DNA of 48,057 nucleotides from positions 19,163 through 67,219 of the forward strand of contig JAKMXF010000047.1 in assembly GCA_024704765.1 (NCBI GenBank), given 5' to 3'. The stretch is from Oopsacas minuta. Its lineage: Eukaryota; Animalia; Porifera. The position numbers and the translations under genes were made by a program. Positions 1,865-43,060 of the stretch are shown piece by piece. How positions within the stretch are numbered: the first letter of the stretch is position 1; every line of letters begins with the position of its first letter. The notes under the pieces are model-generated. The model had not been told where the DNA came from. It saw only the letters and a program-made list of their open reading frames with translations, and did not search any database.

Positions 1865-3004
1865 CACAGGCCTACAAAAAAATGTTATATTGCAGTTGTT
1901 TATATTTTGATCACTGATTTTGACTAATTTAGGTGCGCTGATTCTGAATATCTATTCAGTTTTTTCTTATCACGTCGGGTTTTTTCACAACTATATAGCT
2001 ACATTTTCAGAAAAATCTCGATTTTTGCCAAAAATTCACCATAATTACATATTACAACAATAACATTTTGTACATAGTATATATAGTCAAATAGTCTTAT
2101 TTGCTTATTGGTTTTTATCTAGTCTGTTATTCTTTTTTGTTGATATGTCGAAAAGAAAGTGTTTCAATTTTCCAGACATTTTGTTATATTTGTGGTATCT
2201 ATACTCTGAAACCTCAGATGCAGAATATTACTGAATTTGTGAATAGAGCTTACCATGCGAATTTCAATGTTAAGCTGGGCGACCAGGACAAAAGTTGGGC
2301 ACCTCATAAGGTCTGTAAATCTTGTGTAGAATTATTGAGGTCTTGGAGTAAGGGTAAAGAGAAATACCTCCCTTTCGGAATTCCTACGATTTGGAGAGAA
2401 TCAAAAATCATTTCGATGATTGTTATTTCTGCATGGTAAATGTTATGGGCTGCAAAAAGAGTGACAGACATCTGCTTAATTACCCAAATTTAGAATCTGC
2501 TATTCGACCAGTCCCTCATTGTAGTGATCTACCTGTACCAATATTCACAGAGTTTCTCGGACTCTCTGATGATGAAGATGGTGCCAGTTCGGAAGAAGTC
2601 AATGATCATGACTGTGAATATGATGTTGATTTTCAAAGTCCTCCTCGGAGCCTTGACCGCTCGAAAGAATCTTCTGAGTTGCCTGCATCTAGATTGAAAG
2701 AAAAGAATCTACTCCATCAAGGAACAAAGGTAACATTATATCGTTACAGGGAGCAAGATTTTCAACAGTATTTCTGCGAAAAGAATGGCTTGATGTTTTG
2801 TCCAAATGTTGAGGGTCTTCTACTGGCAATGGGAGTTCTGAACTACAATCCAAGTGACTGGAGGCTGTTTATTGACAGCTCCAAAAGGAGTCTGAAATGT
2901 ATACTACTCCATAATGGAAATATATTCGGTTCAATTCCTATAGGATATTCAGTTAAACTCAAAGAGGAGTACAATAATGTGAAAGAGATATTAGAGATTA
3001 TTAA
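1865..3004 (+). mobile_element. Chapaev (Chapaev3-like, CMC superfamily) transposon relic, 5' part, cut by an assembly gap
   Basis: FCYICG...KLGDQDKSWAPHKVCKSC (ORF 2101-2439), DDCYFC and WRLFIDSSKRSLKCILLHNGN (ORF 2391-3020), with frameshifts. A CAC-initiated end, CACAGGCCTACA, lies at 1865. The relic ends at the N at 3005. Confidence 0.75.
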
Positions 3005-3005
3005 N
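3005..3005. other. Single N: probable contig join or gap
   Basis: n in the sequence; Chapaev homology stops abruptly here. Confidence 0.8.
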
Positions 3006-3159
3006 GAAATGTGCGAATGATGCGCACCACCTTTGCTATGTCTCCAATAGAATTCACCATTACCCGGACCATAGTGCACAACCATAAACAAATACCTAGC
3101 CACGCCACTGCAGACAATCCCAAAATTTGGTCAGAGAAGCGACTTTTTGTAATTAGATG

Positions 3160-7656: not shown

Positions 7657-9946
7657 GATATAGTATTGTACGGTAAATATTATACTCGTAAACAGAATGG
7701 TTTCATGTAGCACAAACAGTTCTTTTATGTCAAGTAAATGAATTACTCATATGTGGAATATCATGTCTCCAAATCAAAAAGCAATATTTTTCCAAAATGT
7801 TGCAATTTCTTTGCTTAGTAAGTATTATTTGGGGAAAATGGCCTAATCTTTGGTGAGCTGTAGGATGTTAAAATAGCGCATCTTTGATTTCAAAGTTATT
7901 GTACGAAATGATTTAGAGATGCTTTCGGAAAACATATTAAAAATTTGTCATGATGTAGTTGGCGGGTTTGTGAGTTATAGCAGTGATCATGGATGGGAGT
8001 ATTTTGTCAACATGCATTTATAGGTCGAAAACCCTCAATGAATAACGAAACTCACTATTGCCGATTTATAGTATATAGCCGATGTACCATACCCTTGTAA
8101 TACATTTTGTTATGATATATACACGGATTATTGCATAGTCGTCAATAAATCCATATTTGATTATTTTCAGGGTTGTCTTATTATGGTAGGAGATCTCATA
8201 TCAACATGTACTATTAGGTAAGGGGTACTTAAGTATATAAAGGGTGGCCAAAAAGTTCTGCCACATTGAAAAATTATTGTAACTTAACGAATTCTCATTC
8301 GATCTTGTTGACATTTTAATATACGCTTCTACAGACTATTACATATAATTTATACGACTGTCATTCAATATATCCACCCTTTTGCTTGATGACAGACTTC
8401 AGACGCTGATTGACTGCCGCTACAGCGGTATGGACAATTTCTTGAGGGATATTTCCCATTCTCGCCTCAAAGATGTCTTCAATGATTTGATATTCGCATG
8501 AGATTTCGAGCTGGTTCTTGACTCCAAAATCGACCAAAGGGTTTAGGTCTGGACTAGAGGGAGACCATTCTACCTTCGTGATAAAGTGGGGAATATTCGC
8601 ACCAAGCCACTCTTGAGTGCTTTTTGCAATGTGAGCAGGCGCATTGTCCTGTTGGAACACAAATGAATCATTTTCAAAACATGGTCTTGCCGAGTTCTTT
8701 CACTAAAGGTTCAAGAATGAGCTCCTTGTATGTTGTAGCGTTGATTTTTACACCAGATGGGAAGAAAACAAGCGGTGTCTGACCAACAGAGGAGATTCCC
8801 GCCCAAACCATCACCGAGAGTGGTTTCTGGACTCGTTTGACAAATCTGTATTTCTCAGTGATGGCAGAGGTATATGTCTACAAATTTCTATCATTCTGAC
8901 GATTTGTTACTTGCTCCACAGTAAAGAGTTTCTCGTCAGAGAAAAGTACTCGATCTAGGCCTTGGGTGGCGAATCGAGAAAGAAGTCCTTTGCTTCTTGA
9001 CAGTCTCTTCATTTTACTTGATCAGTAATGAAGTGAACTTTTCTCGCTTAAAAGAAGATAACTCTAAGTCTCTTCTTACAATATTTTGAAGCGATCCATG
9101 AGATATTTTAGTTCTTTAGCAATTTTCTTACTGATCGCTGAGGATTCCGCCATATCGGACTCCTGACTATCCTTCTCATCCGTACAGTCGTAACTGACAT
9201 TGGGCGACCACTCTTGGGGTTTGTCTATAATGCTACCGGTCTCGTTGAATCGTTTTGTAGTACGAAATATCAACTTTCGCCTTGTTTCTGGAAAATTTAG
9301 TATTCTCATGATTTCCTTTTGATTTTTCTCATTTTTGAATAATTAAATTATTGCTGATCGTTTCCTTTCCATTGCCACTTAATTTGTTGCTATGTACTAA
9401 ATGGTCTACTATTCTGGTGAATTTCGATCCTAAGGCTTTAATCAATTAATTGAATACGAAAGCTACCTATTTATCATGGTTGCATAATTTATATTACTAT
9501 ATGAAGTTTGGGGTAGAAGTTATTTGCCACCCCGTACAATAAATCGGCAGTATTGGGTTTTGTTATATTATTGAGAGTTTTCGGCTTATACATGGATACT
9601 GACAAATTATTTGCATCCATGGCCACCGCTGTACCTCACAAACCTGCCAACTTCATCATGACAAATTTTTAATATGTTTACAAAAGCATCTTTAAATCAT
9701 TTCGTACATTATCTTTGAAATCAATGATGCGATATTAAACGTTCTACATTTTACCAAAGATTGGGACATTTTCTCCAAAGAATGCTTACTCAGCAAAAAT
9801 TACCACATTTTGAAAATTTTTGCTTTTTTTGAAATTATATTCTACATATCAGCAATGTATTTCTTTGCCATAAAAGTATTGTTCGTGCGATCTGAAACTA
9901 TTCTGTATGTCAAGTAACATACTATTTAACATACAATACTATATCC
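7657..9946. mobile_element. Second foldback element with ~410-bp arms; a maT element is inserted in its loop
   Basis: ~7657-8068 is the imperfect reverse complement of ~9541-9946. Examples: CATCATGACAAATTTTTAATATGTTT vs AAACATATTAAAAATTTGTCATGATG; outermost GATATAGTATTG / CAATACTATATC. Confidence 0.8.
8240..9534 (-). mobile_element. Tc1/mariner maT (DD37D) element, degenerate, copy 1
   Basis: TA-flanked TIRs (AAGGGTGGCCAAAAAGTTCTG / AGAAGTTATTTGCCACCCCG). The minus ORF reads FQQDNAPAH...WSPSSPDLNPL with 37 residues to the third D. The N-terminal RTTKRFNETGSIIDKP matches copy 2. Confidence 0.85.
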
Positions 9947-11710: not shown

Positions 11711-12944
11711 CGTGACCTACGTAATATAAGGCCTGATTATTGTGCATAGAATTACCTACCATGGATTACTCAAATTGCATTTTGTAATTCACCCATAATT
11801 GTAACATGCAAAATTGACATTATCTGAATTGTTGAAATTCTGTTTTAATCACTTCTCTTATATAGGTATATATAAATTAGCTCGAGATTATGTTCCGAAG
11901 CATTTCGTTATTTAGGATTTTACAATTTTATCTTATTCTGCAATTATGTTTCATCACTGATTAGACTTGATGCCTAACACTTGCTCTGTACCTGGATGCC
12001 GGAGTAATTATTCAGGGGAGCCATATACACCAGTATTCAGATTACCCTCAAACTCTGAACTTAGAGAAAAATGGCTACGCGGTCTGCACAGGGAAGATAT
12101 TGAAGATCTAAAAAACGTATTTGTTTGTTCTAATCACTTTCGTACTGAAGATGTCATCACTGAAATGGATATGCCTCAACCTGATGGCTCATTACAAAAA
12201 ATTTCTCGGCGACGAATTCTACACAAGAACGCTATACCTTGTCTTCTTCCCAGTTGTCCCAAGTATCCTAGCTCACCATCCCCGAAGCCTGAACGTTTAG
12301 ATCGTGGGAAGATTGAGAGTAAATTGTTCTTTCAAGCCAGAACAGAGCCTTGATCTTCATAAAGCTGAGGACAGTAAGCTCGGTGTCAAATCATTAGGAT
12401 AGCTAAAATCTAAACTCGAAGAATTTGAACTACCTTCTTCTTGGGTTTAAGGTTTTCAGATGACACGTCTATTAACTTGCTAAAGCTGTCAAAAGACAAA
12501 CATATATATACCAGCATTTGTTTCAATTAATGACTCCTTAACACCTACAGGCTTCTGTCAAAACATTCAAATTCCTCACACAATACACAATCTCAGTGAT
12601 ATTCGAGAAATCGATACCATCATCAGCGAGGTTTCTGCATACACTAAGGACCCTGTTGAAAACTGTATTCGCCAAGCTACTTCTAACATTGAAAGTATAA
12701 TTTCGAAGATAGGAACTTCGAACGATATACTAGAGAAATATTCAGAATTGTACCCAGTTAAAATTTCTACTGTCCAGCTTGAGAATACACTAATTCCCAA
12801 AATCGAAGACGGTACAATGTTGTTACAATGGTGCTAGCTCTAAAATCTCATTTGATATCTTCTACCTGCTACAGCTACTTACAGTCTTTGAATTGTTTAA
12901 TATTTCCCCACCCAACAACTCTACGTAGTCCTTATGGGACTATA
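11711..12944 (+). mobile_element. 5' half of a P-element/THAP9-family transposon, cut by the gap at 12945
   Basis: Left-end repeats at 11712-11735 and 11760-11780, then the THAP ORF. A decayed P-type PHPTTLRS motif lies at ~12905-12930. Confidence 0.8.
11967..12353 (+). CDS. THAP (C2CH) zinc-finger domain of the P transposase, prematurely terminated
   Basis: MPNTCSVPGC...FRLP...W...VCSNHF...LHKNAIPCL: C-x4-C...C-x2-H with an AVP-like box. Confidence 0.85.
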   Translation: MMPNTCSVPGCRSNYSGEPYTPVFRLPSNSELREKWLRGLHREDIEDLKNVFVCSNHFRTEDVITEMDMPQPDGSLQKISRRRILHKNAIPCLLPSCPKYPSSPSPKPERLDRGKIESKLFFQARTEP

Positions 12945-20134: not shown

Positions 20135-23100
20135 CAGTGATTATCAACCTGGGGTCCATATAGATTTTAAGGGGTCTGTAGTGTCTTGCCGAAAATCTCG
20201 GATTTCATTTAGCATGAATGCTCATCTATGTACATTGAAGGAACATATATATTTTTAGACAAGCATTCAACATATAATTACTTTCCTCAGACAATGTTTG
20301 TATTATTGGAAGATGTTGATGGTATTAAATAAAGATTGACATATTTGAATTATTCTATTTATGCAACCTTTCAGTATGTTCTTGGAGTGTTGAACTGATT
20401 CATAGAGCTATTAGAAGTGCTATATGTTAATCAATACCATCGTTAGATTCAGATATGCTGTAGAATAATTATTAGATTCTACAGGGTGGCAAATAAGTTC
20501 TGGCACATAGGAAAACTATTATAATTTAACCAATATTCATTATATTGAGTTGATATTTTAGCATAAGTAGTTTGGCATTATGAGTTTTATTGTCCACAAT
20601 CTCTATTCTATGTATCTGCCTTTCTTTTTGATAACAGCCTTCAGACGCCCGGGGACTGCCCACACTGCGGTACGCAGAATCTCCTTCGGGATTTTTGCCC
20701 ATTCTCTCATCAGAGATTGCTTCAGAGTCCCAATACTGTTATGGGAGTTCGAGCAAGCTTGACTCTAAAATGGACCACACTGAGAAATCTAGAGGGTTGA
20801 GGCCTGGGCTAGACGGCGGTCATTCTACCTTTGAATAAAGCCGGGAATGTTTTACTGAAGCCATTCCTGAGTACTGTTTGCTGTAATGGGCAGGAGCAAC
20901 GTCTTGTTCGAATATGAACGGCTGGTTTTCAAACATCATCTCACCAAGATCTTTCACAATGGGCTGTAAAATGAGCTCCTTATACGTTGCAGCATTTATT
21001 TTGACCCCTACAGGGACAAAACCAGTGGTGTCCGGCCAACAGAAGATCTCCGGCCCAAACCATCAACGAGAGTGGTTTCTGGACTCTTTTAACGTACCTG
21101 TACTCATCAGGGATAGTAGAAGTGCTTTTAGATAATATTCTATCGTTTTGACGATTGAATGCTTGTTCAACGGTGAAAAGTTTTTCATCGTAGTAAAGGA
21201 CTTGATCCAGTCCCTGGGCTGCGAATCGTGTATGGAGGATTTTGCTTCATGTGAGGTTCTTTGTCTTTATTTTGTCTGAAAGGAAATGGACATTCCTTTT
21301 CTTAAACGAGGATAGCCCTAAGTCTCTCTTGATAATCGTTTGAAGAGATCCACGGGATATTTTCAGTTCTTTAGCCATTTTTCTGATCGATCGCTGAGGA
21401 TTTCGCCACACTCGACTCCGCACTACCTTTCGCATCTTTACGCTCGTGATGGAGACCGGGCGACCAGTTCTGGCTCTGTCCATCACGCCACCAGTCTCAT
21501 TGAAGCGTTTTATCGTACGGATTACGAAATTCTGACATGTCTGTAGAATTTTTAAAAGTTTCATTATTTCCTTTTGTTTTTTCCCTTTTTGAAATAATTC
21601 AACAATCGCCGACCGTTCTTTCTCCATAGCTGATAATTTGTTCCTGGTTTTCAAATAGTGTATTTTTCAATAAATATTGTATTGCGAGAGATAACAGAAT
21701 AATACAAACCAGTAACGTCAATCAATCTACATCATGAAAGATCTTGGCACGATATTAAGTTATGTGCCAGAACTTATTGGCCACTCTGTAAACTAAGAAT
21801 TGTCAGTTTGCAATTTTCGTGTCATAAATATATATACTTTTTAGTAATTTAAGTATAAATACCACTCCCGTATTATGTTATATATATTTCCAAACTATTA
21901 CTCGCTGCTACAAGTGAATTCACTATAACAAAACTATCTAATAATGGTGCAATGAAGCAAATAAAGTATAATAAAGACTATCTTATGCTTGGATATATTT
22001 CTTTTGAAACTCTTCCAACAACAAAACCAATTTGTATCTAGTGGGGTGAGGATGCTGAGTAACGAGTCAATGAAACTTTCTAAACTGATCCGTGACCAAC
22101 ACACACTATGCTACGACTATTTCTAAAAACAATAGTTTCTTTATGAGAAAAAGAAGCTCCATCACTCGAACCAATGAGCGAATATAGTTTATCTCTCACC
22201 AAAAATGCAATAGATGTAGACAATGCCGGTATTTTATCATTCGATGTAAGCCTGGCCATTGCGAAGTACAGTCAACCTCATTATATAGCAGAAGAAGTAT
22301 TTATGACATGTTGCATTGATATCGTTGGAACAATGTTCAGTGAAAGCGCTGCACAAAAGATCAAATCCATTCCTCTTTCAAATGGTACAGTGAAGAGAAG
22401 AATCGATGTAATGGCTGTGGACTGTGAGGATCAACTCATCCAAAAAGTACATGATAGTCGGACTTGTTGAATGAGTTGAATTTTCTATCCAACTGATGAA
22501 AGTACTACAGTTGCAAGTGAGTCCCTCTACTTGTGTTTGTTCGATCCCTAAACATGAATAAAAAAAGTTTAAAATTGGATCTATTTTGCATTCTGTTAAT
22601 TTATCCCCAACAACAAGAGGAGAAGATATCTTAGGATAAATTTTGGATTTTTCATCTTCACGAGTTGGATTTCAAAAACTCGTAGTTTGCTGTTGGATGG
22701 TCTGCTTCCATGATGGGTGTTCATAGAGGATTCATTGCCAGGATGAAACCAATTGCCCCAAATTGCAATTTTTCATTACTTTTGCATCTAAGAGCGCTGA
22801 GAACGAAGACGCTTTCTCCGATTATAAATGATGTACAGTCAGGCTACAAAAAACTTGTTACCTTTATTCAGTTAAGTCAAGGCCACTGAACAATATGAAA
22901 TTTATCGAATTATGTATCGATGAGGAACACAAAACCCTCTCACTTCATACATAAGTACATTGGTTATTGCGAGGTTGTGTATTAGAGAGGTTATTTGGAC
23001 TACAATTTCCTGTCCGAGGAATTGATGCTAATAATTTTTGCGGTATTTTGAAAGTTGTGATAGTACTTTTTCATATATTTTGCTTATCTATCAGATATTT

Positions 23101-23750
23101 TTGCCATATATACATCTATAATCTGAGACTCCAAGGACAAAATATCACAATAATTGAAACAGTTAAGTCAGTGATCGCACTCAGGGCTTGAATGGTATAC
23201 TGGATTAGCAAGGTCAAGAAAAATAAGTTATCTATGTTTCCTCTACTTAGTGAAATTGTTGCAGATTCGGTACCAACAGATTGCATTGAACTATCCTTGC
23301 TCATATGCATAATTTGGAAGGTGAAATTTTGCAAGGGTTGACAAGATTCAATACGCCGGCTAATTAGCATGGGTGATTGACCCTTTTCTAGCGAAACCAG
23401 AAGTTTCATATTTATCAAACGGAACAGAAGAGGAATTAATAGGACTACAAACGAATACGCAAGCAAACAATAATTCGATAGAAAGTGATACATTTGCCTC
23501 TGGGTTGAAAATAACATCATAGCGAAGACATCATCTTCTATCGCTCGGAAATAATGCATTTTACCTTTCGCAAAAACTTACTTAGCTAAGAGAGCGTTCA
23601 GTGATGTCTTGACGATACACACGAAAATAGAAATAGACTGGAAAGCCATAATGAGCTCAGGCTAGGAAAACAAACATTAAGCCAAATATAGAAATCCATG
23701 CTTATGATACACAAGGATAACTAAGCCATTGAGATCAGAATATAGAACCG
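20135..23750 (+). mobile_element. hAT Buster/Charlie (ZBED5/FAM200-like) relic interrupted by maT copy 2
   Basis: Left TIR CAGTGATTATCAACCTGGGGTCC follows ATCTAGAG (nnnTAnnn target). ORF 22174-22470 reads IAKYSQPHYIAEE...IPLSNGTVKRRI. Later HT*VHWLLRG (HTEVRWLSRG) and a decayed C-terminus. No right TIR was found. Confidence 0.8.
20482..21788 (-). mobile_element. Tc1/mariner maT (DD37D) element, degenerate, copy 2
   Basis: TA|CAGGGTGGCAAATAAGTTCTGGCACA ... TGTGCCAGAACTTATTGGCCACTCTG|TA (24/26). ORF 21247-21654 encodes the paired HTH (GRP motif, RSIRKMAKEL). The catalytic part is frameshifted. Confidence 0.9.
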
Positions 23751-23859
23751 CGATATCTATTATTTAACCCACAATTTCTACTTCAGATCTTTGAAGATTC
23801 TATCTCAATAGTATGAATAATAATAATCATTAAAAAATAATCAGAATTATTGTCATATC

Positions 23860-24060
23860 GAGAGTTAAAGGGCTGGAAGTGGGAAAAAATTCTGATTCCT
23901 TGGAATAAGAAATAAATCCATAATTCCTGTAATTAAAGGGCTGAGAATGGGGATAATTTCTGATTTCAAGGAATGGGAATGAGAATTAGCACCTGATTCC
24001 TGGAATTAAATGGCTGAATGAGAGGGTCCGAAAATTCGGCTTCGGAATGCGGATTAAAGG
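23860..24060. repeat. Imperfect ~50-60-bp tandem repeat
   Basis: Recurrent TTAAAGGGCTG(G/A)A and CTGATTCC(T)TGGAAT blocks. Confidence 0.5.
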
Positions 24061-24089
24061 ATAAATTCTGATTTAAATCCGTACATGGT

Positions 24090-24950
24090 CATAGCAGCAC
24101 CATTAATGTCCTGTTTAAACATCACATCTCCCAAAAGCCTTTATAATGTTTCGATATCACCTAATATGTCCCAAAACGAAGCGCTCTTTTAGTCCGAAGC
24201 ACGATAAAGTCACAAATACATTAAATGTTCCGTTTGCGCATTAGATACCAAAAAAGCAACATTTATGTCCGGTAAGCAACATATATTTCCTAATAGTACT
24301 TGAAATGTCCCGATAGCACAGTATATTCCAAAGGTAAAGCATCATAAAAGTCCCGCCCGCACTTTGATGTCCGGTTATCACATTAAATGTCCCAATAGCT
24401 CCATTACTTTCCTCTTATAACATTTTATATCCCGATATTAGGGATCGACTGGCCTACGGAGAAGAACGGGAGATCTTCCGATAGATCGATGGGCCAGTGA
24501 GCTGCTTATAAACCATTCTGTGCAGTGCAAGAATTTTTCAAAACACAATAGAACTGTCAAACGACGATAAATATTATGGAAGTATTTCAAGGTCTGCCAT
24601 TATCATGATCATTCTGCCCATTTTCTATTGTCAATATATTACGGTAATCTAATTCTCCAAACTATATTTACTCCTTATCTTGCTGCCTGGGCTACATTAG
24701 AGGTCGCAATCTCGGCGTTTTTGCATTCTAATTAGAACGTGTTAGAGAATATATTTTGATAGGGCAAGACATTTTGACACCTATCACATAGAGTTTTTAG
24801 AGATATCATTTAGATATTATAATTTCATTACTTTCTATACACATGATAAGGACTAATCTCTAACTCTTACTATGTCCCAATCTCACATAATATGTCAAGA
24901 TATCACCTTATATGTCTCATTGGGCCCTTAAATTTCTTAAAACTTCAATA
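24090..24950. repeat. Reverse-orientation patch of the ~20-bp minisatellite, interrupted at ~24440-24780
   Basis: Repeated ATGTCCCAATAGC / ATGTCCCGATAGCAC / AGCACCATTAATGTCC motifs. Confidence 0.65.
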
Positions 24951-25114
24951 CTTAATCTAAGGCAACCCCCGTTGGACGAAGTATCTCCTTTCTACTGTAT
25001 GTAATATCCGAAAAGTGTAAAAAAGATAATAATTCGAAATTTGAAAATATTATATGATTCAATTATCAGACTATTTTAGCATAAAACTATTTAATGTAGA
25101 AAAGGTAAAAGATT

Positions 25115-27786
25115 TCAATTTAAGCGATAAGAACGACCAACTGTGTGGTCCTTGTCAATACACATCTTCTTGCACGAAGGTATCTCTAAGGTACGTACCT
25201 TTGTGATAATCTTTGTATTCACAATGTGTTCTGGATAACTTTCATATAGTACTGAAAGAATTGGAGAGAACTGATGGCATGTGTAAGCTCGTTCCAAAAT
25301 ATCGCTCTTAGATATACTGACTTTGCTAGCTACACGCGAAATTAAATCAGAAAAAAATCTTTTAAATATTCTCATCATTCTGGTTTCTAAATATACTTCT
25401 TGGATGGGCTTTTCGTAATTCCATTTTAGAATATGGATTACGACGATTTTTCTTTACAGAAATAATTACTCGATTCAAACATAAGTGAAAAGGCTTCATC
25501 TTGATTCCCATGTCAATCTTGTTCAGATTATGCTCACATTTCAAAGAGGTAGATTCATGGACGGATGATTCAATAGATAAATTAAATGCAGAATCGCTAG
25601 ATTCACAGCTGTATGAATGGTAATCCGATGAGCAGTGCGTTGGAATAGGACCCGCTGTTATAACTGTGTTAGTCTCCAGTGAAAAATCTGGAAATATCAA
25701 TGATTCCGAGAGAGGAGAATTTGATACACGAGATGAACTTAAGTTAGTTGATTCCATCTCAGGTATAATTGGAACAAAATCTTCAAGTTGGGTAGTAGTA
25801 GGCAGAAGATCTTTGTCAGAGCAATGGAAATCACGGGTAATACTATTGTGCGATTGAGTTACTTCAATAGTCCTAGAGTACAAATCTTTAAGGGGAGTTG
25901 AGGTATGATTAGAAGTATTTGTCAAATATTCAGAATCATCTCCATGTAGACTGAGCAACGATTGGGTTGAATCAGAATCACAATTTTGAACGGTATCACG
26001 GACATCGATATTTGTAAGTGCTGAAGAACATTCTGATAGTCCATTAATTAACTCTGAATCTTTAGTAGAGATAGATTCCCAGATTCTACAGTAGTGTTGC
26101 AATAATTCAAATGATCAGGATCAGATTGATAATTCTCAAGACTTTTAAAAGCCTCAGCTAGTCCATCATGTCCAACATTCATCACATAGTACTTGTCGTG
26201 GGCCTTTCTACTGTGGCTAAGAAACAAAGACATCACATCGTTCATTTCGGGATCAAATTTCGCAGTTAATGTAGCCGCAGCTTTTCTAATATCAGTTAAT
26301 GTACCAGTAAAAGAAATACCCATTTGAGAGAGAAAATTCCTCAATATCGGAGTGATTCTGGGCGATGGTATTGGTTGACCCATATAAGTCTGGAAAACAA
26401 AAGATTCTTTTGATAATTGAATGGTATTAGACAGGTAACAAGGAAGTTTATACAAAATAATATGCACAAAGATATCAAGAGAACAAAAATTTCAGGGTAT
26501 ACAAATAAAGTGGCTGGCTGAATATTTCCAGTTTTATGATTTGCAACAATAATCTTATGATAACCCTGTTCAGTAATTTCTAATTCTGCCGATTCTATTT
26601 CCTCAATAATGACTCCAGAAATAACACCCGGTCTAAGTCCATTTGGGATAATTAACTCTGTCATCAAAAAGTTTCGCATCTTTAAATAGTCATCTTGTGA
26701 TAAATTTATATCATCGTTTCCGGTATACCCCTCGAAAAGAAACAAGGAATTGTAAGTTTTACGTTGCTCACGCCACATCTTAAGAACTTTAGTAGTATCA
26801 CTAAATTCCTTTCGGCTCTTTGTAAATATCACTTTTCGTCTCTTTTTCTGTAATTTATTTAATGAAACTATCATACCTTTGATAGTGGATATCAATAATT
26901 GTAATTTGCTTGCATTAGGTAGAAGATCGGCACGATATATTGTTAAGTATTCAACAAACCTCGAAATAGGTAATAGTCTAGAATATAGTGTTGATTGTGA
27001 TTTACCTAATTCCAACTCCCTAGATATATGGTGGTTCAATTTTGAGGAATTGAAAAATGATTTTTCACCTAGAGCATTAAAGATGAATATAATGTTTCGA
27101 TAGTCCATCATTCTGAATTGTAGTGATCTTGAACCTCCGCATATAGTCAAAGAATGATCTCGAAAAGAATAAATGGAGTTCAAAAAATGCTGAGATATAG
27201 TCTTATTAATATTTTTGGGTATAAAAATTGGGTTGTCCTCTAGGATTTCATCATTGGAATCAGCACCTTCTGGAAACTCAAAGGGATCATCGTTTAGATC
27301 ACTCTTTTCCATTCCATCAACTTCACCTACATCTATTTCACAGTTTTCGGTGGATTTTTCCTCAATAACATCTAAAAGTTTGGAAGAAAGAGTAACTTTA
27401 TCATTAATGTCGATAACAGGATTAAACTTAAGATTATTCTGATTAAAGAAGACACGCCGTTGAATACTTTCACAATTTTTCAGAACTTTGTCATAAGCAA
27501 CATCTGTAGATTTTAGTCCATGAAATCGGGTCAAATGAGTAGGTAAATCTTTGACAACATTATTACACCCATTGATCGTACATCTACTTCCAGTTACAAT
27601 CGAATTAACAACATTTCCGTAATCTCGCCTTGAATAACGGGTTTGAAAAATAATTTCGCCTAACTGTTTGGAAGAAATCTTTTTCTGTTTGACATGATAC
27701 CTTAGATGACGCTTGTATTTTTTCGCATTCTTATATTGGAAGCAGATCTCACAAAGAACTCTAGATACTGTTGAATTCGACGTGTC
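25115..27786 (-). CDS. Zinc-finger + tyrosine recombinase (phage-integrase-like) protein, three small frameshifts
   Basis: The frame of ORF 26341-27534 stays open upstream through CEIC..RHLRYH and CTINGC..THLTRFH to a TTTTAG acceptor at ~27786. Catalytic motifs: NGLRPG (R), NHKT (K), TDIRK (HxxR variant), LSHS (H), DKYY (Y), across ORFs 26341-27534 and 26048-26467. An S/T-rich linker (25362-26102) and a C-terminal ORF (25115-25378) follow. Confidence 0.8.
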
Positions 27787-28115
27787 TAAAATAGAAAGAA
27801 TATAATCACAAGAACAAATAGAAAAATACTCCCAAAGTTCTGATCTATTTAAACGGAAATAGTGCTACGAAGGTCCATAAGAACAACTGTCCCAGTTTGC
27901 CCGGTCCAGCATGTATAGACAGTGTAGACTGGGACAAACGATTCTAGCCAGGTCGTGGTCAATCCAGTTCGAATCTAGAATATTGGCGGTACATATCGAT
28001 TTGAATCGCTCCCTATAGCCATATTCAATGCTAACAAGATTATTGTGTTACTCTAAGACTAACACAACGAGCGCACATCACTTGATCGACGCTTCAGGAT
28101 GAGACAGACCTTAGA

Positions 28116-28136: not shown

Positions 28137-28427
28137 GCTTGGATGCTTTTAGTACTTCAAGCTCAAGTATTGCCTAGGGTGCATAAGTTGACCCTGATAT
28201 TGGAAACAACACTTGGCTCAATATTATTTATGTAATGTATATCTTAAAATTCATAACGTAACATTTCTATTTAGATTCATTTAGAGTTAAGGTGTGTGGA
28301 ATTCGATTATCCTAAGTAAGTTTCTAAATGAGATTTGACCGGTTTTCTGGGAAGTTTCAGTATTGTATACGTCTTATCTATGTAGATAGTATCTAACTTA
28401 GAGTGGCTGTATTGGGTGCGGTTGTAT

Positions 28428-28446
28428 CTGTCTCTTATACACATCT
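28428..28446 (+). other. Tn5 mosaic end / Nextera adapter (library artefact)
   Basis: Exact 19-mer CTGTCTCTTATACACATCT. Confidence 0.95.
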
Positions 28447-28596
28447 AATAATACAGATTACTAGGCTATTGAATCTTCTTCAACAGACTAGTAATCTGGA
28501 CTCTATAATAGAATACTACGTGTATAAGGCTCTCCAAAATCAAAAGAAAATTTTCTGAAACAGTACCACATAGGACATCAAAATGCATTATTAGTA

Positions 28597-28782
28597 CAGT
28601 AGAACTCGGATAAGACGTACCCGCTCGGGAAACAGAAATTAGTACGTCTTAACCGAGTGTACGTCTTATCCGAATATGTTTGCATTACAAATAATGATGA
28701 CTGATATTTTGGGATATAAGAAATGGTACGTCTTAACCGAGTGTACGTCTTAAGCCGAGTACGTCTTATCCGAGTTCTACTG
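28597..28782. mobile_element. 186-bp pogo/Tigger-type MITE
   Basis: Perfect 24-bp TIR CAGTAGAACTCGGATAAGACGTAC, TA on both sides, and internal GTACGTCTTA repeats. Confidence 0.9.
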
Positions 28783-30077
28783 TATATATCAGTCCGGTTC
28801 GATATCTATTGAATGTAAATTTATTCCGATAATTAGTACTCTGGAGAAGGAGTAGGAATATTCGCATTCCCCTGGTGTACGTATTAACGATACTCTACTG
28901 TAGTTATGAGTGAAATTATAGGCTATATTTACAAATGAGTTGAAAATCAAGAGTTTTAATACTCGGAACATGGGTAAATAATGGATAATCCTGTTTCTTT
29001 AAAAATAACTTTCTCGTCTTAATTAACACATACGTATAAAACTACAATATTGAAATAATGAATTACATGATGTGTATTCTGCTAATGGGGAAAATGGAAC
29101 TAAATACTATGAAGGGAATCGAAAATATACAAAAATATGTTGAAAAAAACTGTAAATTTTCTCTAAAATTCCTGATCTGTGTATACAAAACCGTGAATAG
29201 TCAAGGGAATGTCACAACAAACAAAACACAAAATATCATTCAGGAATAGTCAAACCGCGACGGTATACTCGCGAACTTCGAGGGATCCCTGTTGTGTATT
29301 ATTCGCTCGAATTGCATTTGATTCTATCTCAATCGATCCAATTCCAGGGTATAAAATTATTCAATCATATTCCTATCTATCCCAATCCGCATAGTGGGCT
29401 ACTAAGATGCATTAGGCCCAAATTCTTACCTTCTATTCATACCATTTTGAATTATGAATTAGATTCTAGTTTTATTCAATGAACAATATGTAAAGTATCA
29501 GATGAAATAGTTAGGTATTTCAGTTTTTGTGGTCAATCAAATCTAGAACTTCATTGCTGTATTCTATGTTTATACATGCATTATATAAATGACAGAAGCA
29601 ATTTCAATAATCTGATAAATGTATGATGCATACTATTGTTCATCTACATGCATCCCAAGCAAAGTGAGTGTGCTGAATTTGAATATATCATTATTTTTCT
29701 TCAGGAACGAGAAGGTTAATCAGATACTACGGATACAATACTGTGAAAAATTTTGTAGAAATTCCTCTAGGTCATAAGCCATATTAGTGACAGCAAATTT
29801 GTTTCCACTAGTTTCTACCCTGAATCTTTAGTATATTATCTTGTCAAGTAATTTAAACATTATATTAAAAGTACAAATGTCGCTTCATTGCGTAACATAT
29901 TAAATTTTATCGAATTCTATTCTCACATTTATATTGCTATGGTACAATATAATGTAATTACATTGTCATTTGACACCAATATAACGCAATAATTATCTAT
30001 ATATACTGAATACTACGAGGTAGCATACAAGTTCATCAACTTGATAACCTATAAAACCTCTATTTATCAATTTAAAG

Positions 30078-39599: not shown

Positions 39600-40970
39600 T
39601 TCGTCATGAAGAAGTTGTTTGAATAACCCAAATGTATTCTGCTATATTTGTTGTGGTGGCTACACTATGAGAGAACAGCGAAAACCTATTTCTGACTTTG
39701 TTAAGAAGGCATATCTTGCTTATTTTGGAGTCAGGCTTGGAGACCAACATAAACTCTGGGTCCCAGAATACAGGCCAAATGAATGGCGCCTTTTTGATCG
39801 ACAGTTCTACTAGGAGTTTGAAGTGTGTTTTGCTCCATAATGGGAACAAATATGCTTCTATTCCAATTGGTCACTCAACCAGTATGAAGGAGGAGTATGA
39901 GTCAATCAAACTGGCTTTGGAGAAACTGAAATATCATGTTCATCAATGGGTAATTTGTGTTGACTTAAAGATGGTTAATTTTCTCCTTGGCCAGCAAAGT
40001 GACTACACAAAATATCCATGCTCCCTTTGTCTTTGGGATAGCGGAGCAAGAAATGACCACTGGACGAGAAAAGATTGGCCCTTGAGAAAGAATATGGTAG
40101 TGGGAGAAATGAACATCATTAACAAACCTATGATTACAAACAGGGGAAAAATCATTCTTCCACCACTGCATATCAAACTGGGCTTTATGAAACAATTCGT
40201 CAAAGCTCTAAATGAAGATGATTCCTGCTTCCATTATCTATTCAGTTCATTTCCTGAACTTAGCATCGAAAAGTTCAAAGCTGGAATTTTTGATGGCCCC
40301 CAAGATCAGAAAGCTCACTAAAGACACATGTTTTATTAGTTCCATGAATGACCCTGATTCTGAAGCTTGGTCCGCATTTGTATTTGTTACACAAATTTTT
40401 TGGGCAACTACAAAGAAAATTCCGCTGAATTAGTAGGCAACATGCTCTCGAAATTCAATAATCTTGGCTGTAAGATGAGCATCAAGGTTCATTACCTCCA
40501 TAACCATTTAGATCATTCCCCGGAAAACCTTGGTGACCTAAGTGAAGAACTAGGAGAAAGGTTCCATCAAGACATCAGGGTAATGGAAGAGAGATACCAA
40601 GGAAGGTGGGATATTCACATGATGGGAGATTACTGCTGGAGTCTTCAGCGAGATTGTCCAGGCAAATCTCACTCAACGGTGTCCCGGGGAAGACGCTTTT
40701 TAGACGTTGATTGATTGTTTCTACTGTTTATGGAATTTTCTGTATACATTTTTACTCTTGTGATAACGTTTATGCTAAAGGCAAAACATTCTCAACATGT
40801 ATATTCGTATATGTATATATTATACTAATTAATTAGTTTAAGTCAATCGCCGATATATTTCAAAAACAAGAGCTGATTGATAAAAACTGAGGGCATTTTT
40901 CGAATCTACGGACAAAATATAACTAAAAACAAGTCAAACTTCCAAGGCACCAAATACATGTTGACCAATG
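39600..40970 (+). mobile_element. Chapaev3-like transposon, internally deleted and frameshifted
   Basis: NNPNVFCYIC, GDQHK, IDSSTRSLKCVLLHNGN, LPPLHIKLGFMKQFVKAL, SEELGERFHQDI and MGDYCWSL. Right end ...GTTGACCAATG at 40970. Left end not located. Confidence 0.8.
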
Positions 40971-41723: not shown

Positions 41724-43060
41724 CAGGGGCATTCAATATATACTAATCACTGTATATTTTTAATGAAATAGCAGTTCTAAGCTAGTATTTCTCAGTGCAA
41801 TTATATAGAACCATATTTCAACTTTCTAACAAAACTTAGAGAGAGTTGATCACTTAATTATTTCCTAAGTTTCAGTTATTTTTAGAAACCTACATTTTCT
41901 CCTTTACATTTTTCATGGCTTCTTGTCCAAATTTTTCGGAACTTGAACAACGAACGTACATCAAATTTCGCACCATTCTCGAAATCCCTCCAAAGTCTAT
42001 TCATGAGGATTTGGCAACGATATGTGGAGAAAATACTTTATCGTATTCAACTGTCAGAAGGTGGGTGAGCCAATTTAGGGAAGGTAGGACCTCTGTCCAA
42101 GACGCCCCTCGTCCTGGAGCACCAAAACTGGCGACCAACAATGACAAATTGAGTGAAGTAAAGGAATATGTCAAGTCTTTTCCGCATTCTTCGGTTGAGG
42201 AGGTAGCTAACTATGTTGGCATTTCAACGGGAAGTGCACACACAATTCTGAAGGCGGATTTAGAACTGAGGAAGGTCCAAGTGCGATGGGTACCACATTG
42301 CTTAACTTTTCCACAAACGGCCACGAGACTCCAAATGGCTAAGGAAAACCTTGAAATTTATGAAGGAAGTGACCCTAGGCGGTTATTAGAGTTAGTAACA
42401 GGAGATGAAACATGGATACAATTCAAACCACCGATCAGAAAGCAAGATGGCAGGGTATGGCTAAAGAAGGGAGAGGTACCCCCAGCTGTTGGTGTATCCG
42501 ACTTCCGTGCCCCGAAGGTCTTGTACTGCATATTTTTCGATGGCCTAGGTACTGTAGCCCAAATCCCTGTTCCCAAAGGTCAGACACTCACAGGACAATT
42601 TTACGCAGATGTGGTGTTGCCTGAGGTCGAAAAACATTATCTTAAGCATCGTCCAAAGACTGGAACTCGTGGTCTCAAAATTTTGCACGATAATGCTAGA
42701 CCGCATAAATCTTTGGCTGTAAGGCAAAAAATTAAAGATATGGGTATGCACGAAGTTCCACATCCACCTTACTCCCCTGATATAGCCCCATGTGACTTCT
42801 GGCTGTTTAGAAAACTCAAAGATAACCTCTCCGGACGCGAATTTGAGGATCGGCTCAGCCTCGGTCGGGCAATTTACAGATACCTTGAAGTCATTCCCAA
42901 GGATGAGTACAGAAAGACATTTGAAAATTGGATTAAAAGGCTAAATTCAGTTGTAGCGTATAAAGGATTCTACTTTGAACATTCATAGCAAAAATTACCA
43001 ACTTTACACAAGTATCTATAGTTTTTAGATGGTATGATTAGTATTTATTGAATGCCCCTG
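41724..43060 (+). mobile_element. Full-length mariner (DD34D), 1337 bp
   Basis: 27-bp TIRs (25/27 match) flanked by TA on both sides, enclosing an intact transposase ORF. Confidence 0.95.
41915..42988 (+). CDS. Mariner transposase, 357 aa, uninterrupted
   Basis: WVPHCL, TGDETW, HDNARPH-(34 residues)-YSPDIAPCDF; bipartite HTH N-terminus. Confidence 0.95.
   Translation: MASCPNFSELEQRTYIKFRTILEIPPKSIHEDLATICGENTLSYSTVRRWVSQFREGRTSVQDAPRPGAPKLATNNDKLSEVKEYVKSFPHSSVEEVANYVGISTGSAHTILKADLELRKVQVRWVPHCLTFPQTATRLQMAKENLEIYEGSDPRRLLELVTGDETWIQFKPPIRKQDGRVWLKKGEVPPAVGVSDFRAPKVLYCIFFDGLGTVAQIPVPKGQTLTGQFYADVVLPEVEKHYLKHRPKTGTRGLKILHDNARPHKSLAVRQKIKDMGMHEVPHPPYSPDIAPCDFWLFRKLKDNLSGREFEDRLSLGRAIYRYLEVIPKDEYRKTFENWIKRLNSVVAYKGFYFEHS

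Follow-up and report, generated by a model that had tools for sequence, protein, structure and literature searches.

In animals, DNA elements with a tyrosine recombinase (YR) are rare and have been little characterised. In many groups of Cryptons, short direct repeats of 4-6 bp are found at the termini. The term Crypton is operational and denotes a eukaryotic DNA transposon with a YR only; Cryptons are polyphyletic, and their groups are split by accessory domains (PMC13465315). Animal Cryptons have been described without a C-terminal domain or terminal repeats, and their domestication in animals is known; domesticated DUF3504 genes have mostly lost their catalytic residues (PMC3212892, Kojima & Jurka 2011). 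The present analysis concerns a gene for a zinc-finger tyrosine recombinase in a 48,057-nucleotide stretch of the glass sponge Oopsacas minuta (GenBank assembly GCA_024704765.1, contig JAKMXF010000047.1, positions 19,163 to 67,219; the whole stretch is called the window, and coordinates are those of the window unless the locus of a relative is named). The window is AT-rich (33-40% GC), animal DNA laden with transposons. The recombinase gene lies on its minus strand at 27785-25115 and consists of four overlapping open reading frames (ORFs). With moderate confidence, the locus is interpreted as a decayed copy of a single-gene, YR-only, Crypton-like element belonging to a mainly sponge lineage.

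An earlier note, made from the sequence alone, had joined the four ORFs into about 890 codons without an in-frame stop. This was confirmed: the stop-free path comprises about 889 codons and runs from 27785 to 25118. The four pieces were searched separately; for the whole protein, and for the analysis of its fold, intact natural relatives were used instead. In tblastn searches, intact relatives were aligned over all ORF pieces, namely in frame -1 at 27789-26473 and in frame -3 at 26530-26075 and, for the tail part, in frame -2 at 25421-25371 followed by frame -3 at 25369-25172. As the relatives are collinear with all four pieces, the joined path represents real homology and not chance. The two fingers, acidic linker, GGSRS motif, catalytic set, Ser/Thr-rich linker and helical tail were all found where they had been described. 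The features of the gene are as follows.

28258-28264, minus strand: candidate first exon, an ATG plus four nucleotides, then GT (ATGTTAC followed by GT); phase correct, tentative
27786-27812, minus strand: 3′ splice acceptor, pyrimidine tract and AG; exon 2 starts at 27785 in phase 1
27694-27753, minus strand: zinc finger 1, C-x2-C-x12-H-x3-H, from pattern and alignment
27520-27582, minus strand: zinc finger 2, C-x4-C-x9-H-x4-H, from pattern; the spacing varies in relatives
26341-27534, minus strand: ORF A, open upstream to 27864, from the ORF list
27232-27324, minus strand: acidic linker
26740-27200 (boundaries approximate), minus strand: SAM-like, all-helical core-binding domain, predicted from AlphaFold2 (AF2) and Foldseek analysis of the relative P0002
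27138-27124, minus strand: GGSRS, inside the core-binding domain
26476-26740, minus strand: first half of the catalytic domain, frame -1
26643-26626, minus strand: NGLRPG with Arg I
26538-26527, minus strand: HKT with the beta-hairpin Lys
26476-26486, minus strand: frame break 1 (frame -1 to -3), in or beside a T-run, from tblastn
26048-26467, minus strand: ORF B, from the ORF list
26114-26476, minus strand: second half of the catalytic domain, frame -3, 50-64% identical to intact relatives
26296-26282, minus strand: TDIR with Arg II, Thr instead of His
26221-26204, minus strand: LSHSRK with the catalytic His
26197-26186, minus strand: DKYY, region of the Tyr nucleophile
within 26048-26102, minus strand: frame break 2 (frame -3 to -2), in the overlap of ORFs B and C
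25362-26102, minus strand: ORF C, from the ORF list
25422-26047, minus strand: Ser/Thr-rich linker, poorly conserved, frame -2
25163-25400, minus strand: C-terminal four-helix domain, about 65-78 aa, single copy, matched by a hidden Markov model (HMM) at E = 8e-32
25365-25371, minus strand: frame break 3 (frame -2 to -3), inside the C-terminal domain, from tblastn
25115-25378, minus strand: ORF D, from the ORF list
25115-25117, minus strand: stop codon of ORF D

The three frame breaks that had been noticed were likewise seen when intact relatives were aligned to the window with tblastn. At break 1, residues 5-429 of the relative P0154 stopped at 26485 and residues 431-551 restarted at 26482, while P0002 is uninterrupted at this position. 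At break 3, residues 828-844 of P0154 stopped at 25371 and residues 846-906 restarted at 25369; in the alignment this break splits the consensus of the tail domain between ORFs C and D. Break 2 could be placed only to 26048-26102, because the linker is not conserved there. Breaks 1 and 3 adjoin short homopolymer runs.

All catalytic residues of a tyrosine recombinase, i.e. Arg I, Lys, box II, His and Tyr, are present in the window in the correct order. Two alignments, with 35 and 38 members of the family, showed no variation at G, K, F, R and H and at least 90% conservation at R, N, R, H, T, T and Y, giving the family pattern R...HKT...T-x-x-R...H...Y. Profile alignment placed the T-x-x-R of the family on the H-x-x-R of the integrase 3nkh. 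Two distant members exceed the gathering cutoff (27.1 bits) of the Pfam model PF00589 (Phage_integrase), P0136 with 37.4 bits and P0116 with 31.5 bits; at E ≤ 0.01 the model was matched by 12 of 35 members, and at E ≤ 5 by 18 of 38. P0002 reached only E = 0.059 with this model; the link between P0136 and P0002 has an E value of 1.7e-10. Since only distant members passed PF00589 and P0136 is tied to P0002, the membership of the window copy is transitive, via its homologs. Weak matches to Phage_int_SAM_1 and Phage_int_SAM_4 were seen in 7 and 4, respectively, of 38 scanned sequences. P0002 had no match in PHROGs and, alone or together with P0001, no significant match among Pfam models or PDB sequences; a profile search of PDB sequences yielded marginal integrase matches only (E = 0.016).

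To examine the fold, residues 150-545 of P0002, which is 47-59% identical to the window copy, were modelled with AF2 from a 38-sequence alignment. The model had a mean predicted local distance difference test (pLDDT) score of 91.2, with values above 90 in the helical N-domain. The top Foldseek matches in PDB were all tyrosine recombinases (XerA, Cre, lambda Int, XerH, IntI and Tn1549 Int), with a probability of 1.00 and E values from 1e-6 to 6e-3 over about 360-400 columns spanning both domains. Thus the fold check proposed by the earlier note did return an integrase fold, with XerA, Cre and lambda Int among the matches, and the claim of a tyrosine recombinase with a complete catalytic set was borne out by the conserved residues, the PF00589 matches of distant members and the AF2/Foldseek result. 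As judged from conserved residues and the predicted structure, the protein family is a genuine tyrosine recombinase with a two-domain fold.

The best structural matches, XerA, XerC/D, Cre and lambda Int, share with the window family a helical core-binding domain, a catalytic domain and the residues R, K, R, H and Y, and prokaryotic and phage recombinases account for the only Pfam families matched (PF00589 and the SAM-like domains). Identity to these enzymes is only about 10-17%, however, and the window family is eukaryotic and intron-containing, has zinc fingers, long disordered linkers and a tail, and carries Thr in the HxxR box. DIRS, Ngaro, PAT and VIPER are also eukaryotic mobile elements using a tyrosine recombinase, but they encode Gag and reverse transcriptase (RT)/RNase H, in some cases also a methyltransferase, and have terminal repeats that are split or inverted; no such feature was found beside the gene or within 10 kb of its relatives. 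A Pfam scan of the neighbouring window ORFs of at least 75 aa detected no RT, RNase H, capsid or polymerase, as the earlier note had stated for RT, capsid and polymerase, and none of the four was found in the precomputed Pfam annotation of genes within 10 kb at 12 relatives' loci. This argues against a DIRS-like or viral context.

With Cryptons (CryptonA/CryptonI) the window family has in common that it is eukaryotic, that a YR is the sole recognisable enzyme, that RT is lacking, that no terminal inverted repeats (TIRs) were detected, that copy number is low, that introns are possible and that non-bilaterian animals are hosts. The recombinase of CryptonA is a DUF3504 protein, whereas no match to DUF3504 (PF12012) was listed for the 35 and the 38 members scanned, also at E ≤ 5 (among the 25 commonest of 39 families). 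DUF3435 was not matched by any family member, and GCR1_C, the C-terminal DNA-binding domain of CryptonF, was matched neither by full-length members nor by 13 C-terminal domain sequences. The family further differs from Cryptons in its two conserved N-terminal zinc fingers, in an often duplicated C-terminal helical domain, in the Thr of box II and in that short terminal direct repeats were not found. The comparison with DUF3504 and DUF3435 that the earlier note had called for was therefore negative for both. The gene is already annotated in GenBank, albeit wrongly spliced (see below). Judged by Pfam matches and published descriptions, the family fits the operational class of YR-only, Crypton-like elements but has a new architecture, and it would be filed as a new Crypton-like lineage instead of being placed outside all known kinds.

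The two N-terminal fingers and the C-terminal helical domain, roughly 65 aa long, are conserved. The Cys and His ligands of both fingers were invariant in all nine aligned sequences, and an HMM of the finger region matched 53 of 182 collected relatives, including, weakly, distant members; the match to Pfam zf-C2H2 was not significant (E = 4.3). The content of Ser and Thr is 25% over the whole ORF C piece, and an equivalent low-complexity linker is present in relatives (P0173). In the window, as in P0173, a KPFH motif (25496-25485) precedes the tail domain, whose helical motif was located at 25400-25184. The consensus of the tail is roughly SIF....DE.IF..VFS.LI.RV.....SK..IL.RA.....F.PVL..L......DV..KI.NKVR.LG, and the homologous repeat of P0156 was predicted by AF2 to be a small four-helix unit (pLDDT 96.5). 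No PDB fold resembled the tail (best E = 1.3), and 13 C-terminal domain sequences had no match in Pfam. Two tandem copies of the tail are present in 22 of the 39 relatives that matched the domain. The sole copy of the window is equivalent to the first of these, and a six-frame HMM scan of 23000-26200 detected no second repeat. The single tail copy, preceded by KPFH as in P0173, indicates that the window copy is either 3′-truncated or derived from a one-repeat lineage.

An initial word search yielded, besides the gene model of the locus itself, a single relative; the remaining relatives were obtained by a full HMMER scan, seeded with the intact relative P0002, which gave 328 representatives of clusters at 50% identity (E ≤ 1e-3). 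The family occurs mainly in sponges, with distant kin in cnidarians; it is largely undescribed and comes from glass sponges. Uninterrupted ORFs of 843-1014 aa include P0004, P0005, P0009, P0012, P0015, P0154, P0156 and P0173, the longest of which are P0173, P0154 and P0012 (1005-1014 aa). Many members are short pieces on contigs of hundreds of kb, and the relatives from HiFi-based assemblies include many genuinely broken copies. The family is thus large and mostly fragmentary, which indicates a decay like that of transposable elements. A second member in O. minuta, P0023 (LOD99_6166), is a 234-aa model on a 412-kb contig and corresponds to the linker and the core-binding region. Its identity is 41% to the window copy but 65-67% to P0002, which derives from another sponge sample, so that at least two old lineages coexist in the O. 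minuta genome. Likewise, different subfamilies with 35-60% identity coexist in one sample or genome. No relative was detected in IMG/VR viral contigs scanned with P0173 or in JGI metagenomes scanned with a window piece.

Exon 2 lacks an ATG: no in-frame start codon lies between the stop at 27865-27867 and finger 1, and the intact ORF of the relative's locus L009 is likewise without an ATG before finger 1. In the window and in L002, L009, L011 and L012, a pyrimidine tract with AG precedes the Cys codon that opens finger 1 by exactly 32 nt; in L005 and L007 the distances are 29 and 35 nt, so that the phase is unchanged. The splice acceptor at about 27786 and the intron it had been taken to imply are thus supported by comparison, with position and phase conserved in seven loci. 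That the start codon had simply been lost was also considered and was rejected, as the conserved position and phase of the acceptor point to a conserved intron. L009 has a consensus donor in the right phase (ATGTTAT followed by GTAAGT) 132 nt upstream of the acceptor, and homologous motifs are present in L011 and L012. In L011 (about 9020-9876) the putative exon 1 motif (ATGCACCATGTTACAT followed by GT) is found about 870 nt ahead of the acceptor, indicating an insertion of about 750 bp inside the 5′ intron. The candidate exon 1 of the window lies 472 nt upstream of the acceptor and has a weak donor (GTTATG); the chance of such a match, estimated after the fact, is about 0.01. A perfect inverted repeat of 9 bp (TGTCCCAGT and ACTGGGACA, spacer about 31 nt) was also observed on the minus strand at 27900-27950, in a relatively GC-rich stretch just upstream of the acceptor. 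It could be due to chance, or be a regulatory or recombination site.

The locus is represented in GenBank by a 520-aa hypothetical protein of O. minuta, LOD99_10617 (KAI6659819.1), which was found in the word search with the longest piece. Residues 280-520 correspond to 26087-25365 at 100% identity and residues 1-306 map to 27798-26881, showing that LOD99_10617 is the gene model of this locus; the contig is thus from a sponge and not human. The model places its first exon, of 13 nt, 3.7 kb upstream at about 31483, uses the acceptor at 27786, removes 26955-26087, and with it the whole catalytic domain, as an 'intron', and ends at 25362, so that the tail domain is left out. Removal of the catalytic domain looks like the predictor's way round the frame breaks. 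The UniRef label of the entry is 'C2H2-type domain-containing protein'; LOD99_10617 is, however, a mis-spliced model of what is most likely a transposon-derived pseudogene and not a host C2H2 gene.

The assembly of O. minuta is a SPAdes hybrid of Illumina paired-end, Nextera mate-pair and corrected PacBio reads and was polished with Pilon (PMC10280926). Given the Illumina polishing with Pilon, the three breaks are probably real, and together with the missing second tail repeat they make it likely that the window copy is a pseudogene. As assembled, with three breaks and without the second repeat, it cannot make the full protein. Since in-frame stops have not yet arisen, it is probably a fairly recent fossil. 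The alternative, that the gene is intact and functional, that the breaks are assembly errors and that the animal makes a two-exon product of about 890 aa, would agree with the roughly 889 codons free of in-frame stops, with the position of at least breaks 1 and 3 beside short homopolymer runs, with the PacBio reads in the hybrid assembly and with an untrimmed Nextera adapter 640 bp upstream, a sign of a locally imperfect assembly. It is nevertheless considered unlikely: the assembly derives chiefly from Illumina k-mers and was polished, it would be unusual for three independent indels to fall within 1.1 kb, the locus lacks the second tail repeat that most full-length relatives have, a good donor or start exon was not found nearby, and the HiFi-based relatives show that truly broken copies are common in the family. 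The description of the gene as near-intact, young and possibly functional is accordingly overstated. The adapter itself is an exact Nextera mosaic end (CTGTCTCTTATACACATCT) at 28428-28446 on the plus strand, where it gives rise to an 'MCIRDR' ORF; it is embedded because Nextera mate-pair libraries had been used. It possibly marks a mis-join; its position, about 640 bp upstream of the recombinase gene, falls within the 3.7-kb 'intron' that the GenBank model assumes.

Evidence for mobility is indirect. It consists of the hundreds of diverged, mostly fragmentary relatives, the two O. minuta members with only 41% identity, the subfamilies found side by side in one sample, and a unit shared by relatives' loci. 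This unit of 4.4-4.7 kb, comprising the ORF with about 450 bp upstream and about 950 bp downstream, was 87.7% identical between the samples ERZ25766962 and ERZ25072730 and had sharp edges in unrelated flanks. Sharp boundaries were seen only in L012 versus L009/L011 and at the left edge of L007/L008. It is inferred from such comparisons that the family is mobile. In intact members, the enzyme would bind the element ends, probably helped by the fingers and the tail domains, and would excise and reinsert the element by conservative site-specific recombination via a 3′-phosphotyrosyl intermediate; a circular intermediate is probable, as proposed for Cryptons. A short 5′ intron would part the tiny start-codon exon from the main exon.

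L007 and L008 lie on different primary contigs of one HiFi (hifiasm) assembly. From position 9616 they are 99.4% identical for at least 13 kb past a sharp junction (TTGGGTGATTTTATC…), which is 385 bp upstream of the recombinase ORF; upstream of the junction their sequences are unrelated, and the right end lies beyond the data. The shared block would be compatible with a large element whose recombinase sits at its end.

Several results weigh against a decayed Crypton-like element. In the window species no close second copy, ends, terminal repeats or target-site signature were found, so that the earlier statement that the gene defines an element was not substantiated for O. minuta. Only one copy of the gene is present in the window, a search of the window and of the relatives' loci detected neither direct nor inverted terminal repeats, and no tRNA gene that might serve as a target was found nearby. 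Groups of relatives' loci (L002/L003/L004, L005/L006 and L001/L009/L010/L011) are collinear across their whole flanks of 19-23 kb, indicating that most of the high-identity copies from other sponges are the same locus, alleles or large duplicates; no independent insertions within one genome were seen. The window pieces had no match to any Pfam model, PF00589 included, nor to NCBIfam or PDB sequences; box II carries Thr in place of His; and the frame breaks, situated in or beside short homopolymers, could still be assembly errors. As to box II, the alignments indicate that the Thr is a family-wide trait and not a lesion of the window copy. The collinear flanks, the failure to find terminal repeats, the conserved intron position and the known domestication of Cryptons in animals (PMC3212892) would all agree with a host multigene family, domesticated or never mobile, of which the window copy is an ordinary pseudogenised paralogue. 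This explanation is regarded as rather improbable, as the catalytic residues are fully kept, unlike in most domesticated DUF3504 genes (PMC3212892), as hundreds of diverged and fragmentary copies exist, as several lineages sharing only 35-60% identity occur together within a single sample or genome, as the sharp-edged 4.4-4.7 kb unit lies in unrelated flanks, and as the genes sit in surroundings rich in transposable elements.

The recombinase might also be the end-located 'captain' of a larger cargo-carrying or virus-like element, the unit of about 4.5 kb being its recombination module. The junction 385 bp upstream of the ORF in L007/L008, with 99.4% identity over at least 13 kb downstream, and the at least 19 kb shared by L002, L003 and L004 would fit such an arrangement, and a YR gene a few hundred bp from a sharp junction with a long shared block, as seen in L007/L008 only, is what is found with Starship captains. 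The captains, however, are known from fungi (Pezizomycotina), whereas the host here is an animal, DUF3435 is never matched, and the shared blocks hold no recognisable cargo, capsid or polymerase, only hAT/mariner debris and satellites; the blocks may be haplotigs that differ by an unrelated indel where the junction lies. As no relatives were found in IMG/VR viral contigs and the window flanks consist of other transposon remnants, a captain is highly doubtful. A bolder proposal, that proteins with zinc fingers, YR and tail form an undescribed superfamily of YR DNA transposons in non-bilaterians, with active copies elsewhere (e.g. P0173, P0154 and P0012) and possibly as the end-located recombinase of blocks above 13 kb, a counterpart of Starships, is distinctly improbable. 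Under the preferred interpretation, a decayed Crypton-like element, a lineage abundant in sponges, with distant kin in cnidarians, sequence-specific-looking fingers and a new, duplicated helical domain, would widen the known diversity of eukaryotic YR elements, and the intact enzymes of related sponges would serve tests of how such elements choose ends and targets.

Other repeats and transposon remnants were observed around the gene. The claim that it is far better preserved than its neighbours held only in part, as an uninterrupted mariner/Mos1-like transposase ORF of 357 aa on the plus strand (41915-42988), with HTH_48 and weak, partial DDE-type matches below the Pfam cutoffs, is preserved no less well. 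A remnant of Tc1/mariner type (20480-21790) has inverted repeats of 30 bp (93%) and holds an ORF of 135 aa on the minus strand (21247-21654) with paired-like and Sleeping-Beauty-type helix-turn-helix domains. The ORF sets at 2101-3020 and 39698-40714, both on the plus strand, share the motif …RSLKC[IV]LLHNGN…SIPIG[YH]S…KEEY… and are thus two copies of another repeat family; 39698-40321 had no match in Pfam. An ORF of 128 aa on the plus strand (11967-12353) encodes a clear THAP domain (E = 4e-15). A unit of about 190 bp at 28595-28784, resembling a miniature inverted-repeat transposable element, has TIRs of 29 bp (97% complementary) and an internal tandem repeat of 16-17 bp, and a 71%-identical copy of it is present at 1376-1532. 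Among the relatives, genes similar to hAT, MULE and FAM200/ZBED5 neighbour the recombinase in L002-L004, L001 and L012, and a satellite array with units of about 161 bp lies downstream of it in L005 (17416-23018) and L006 (17417-23018).

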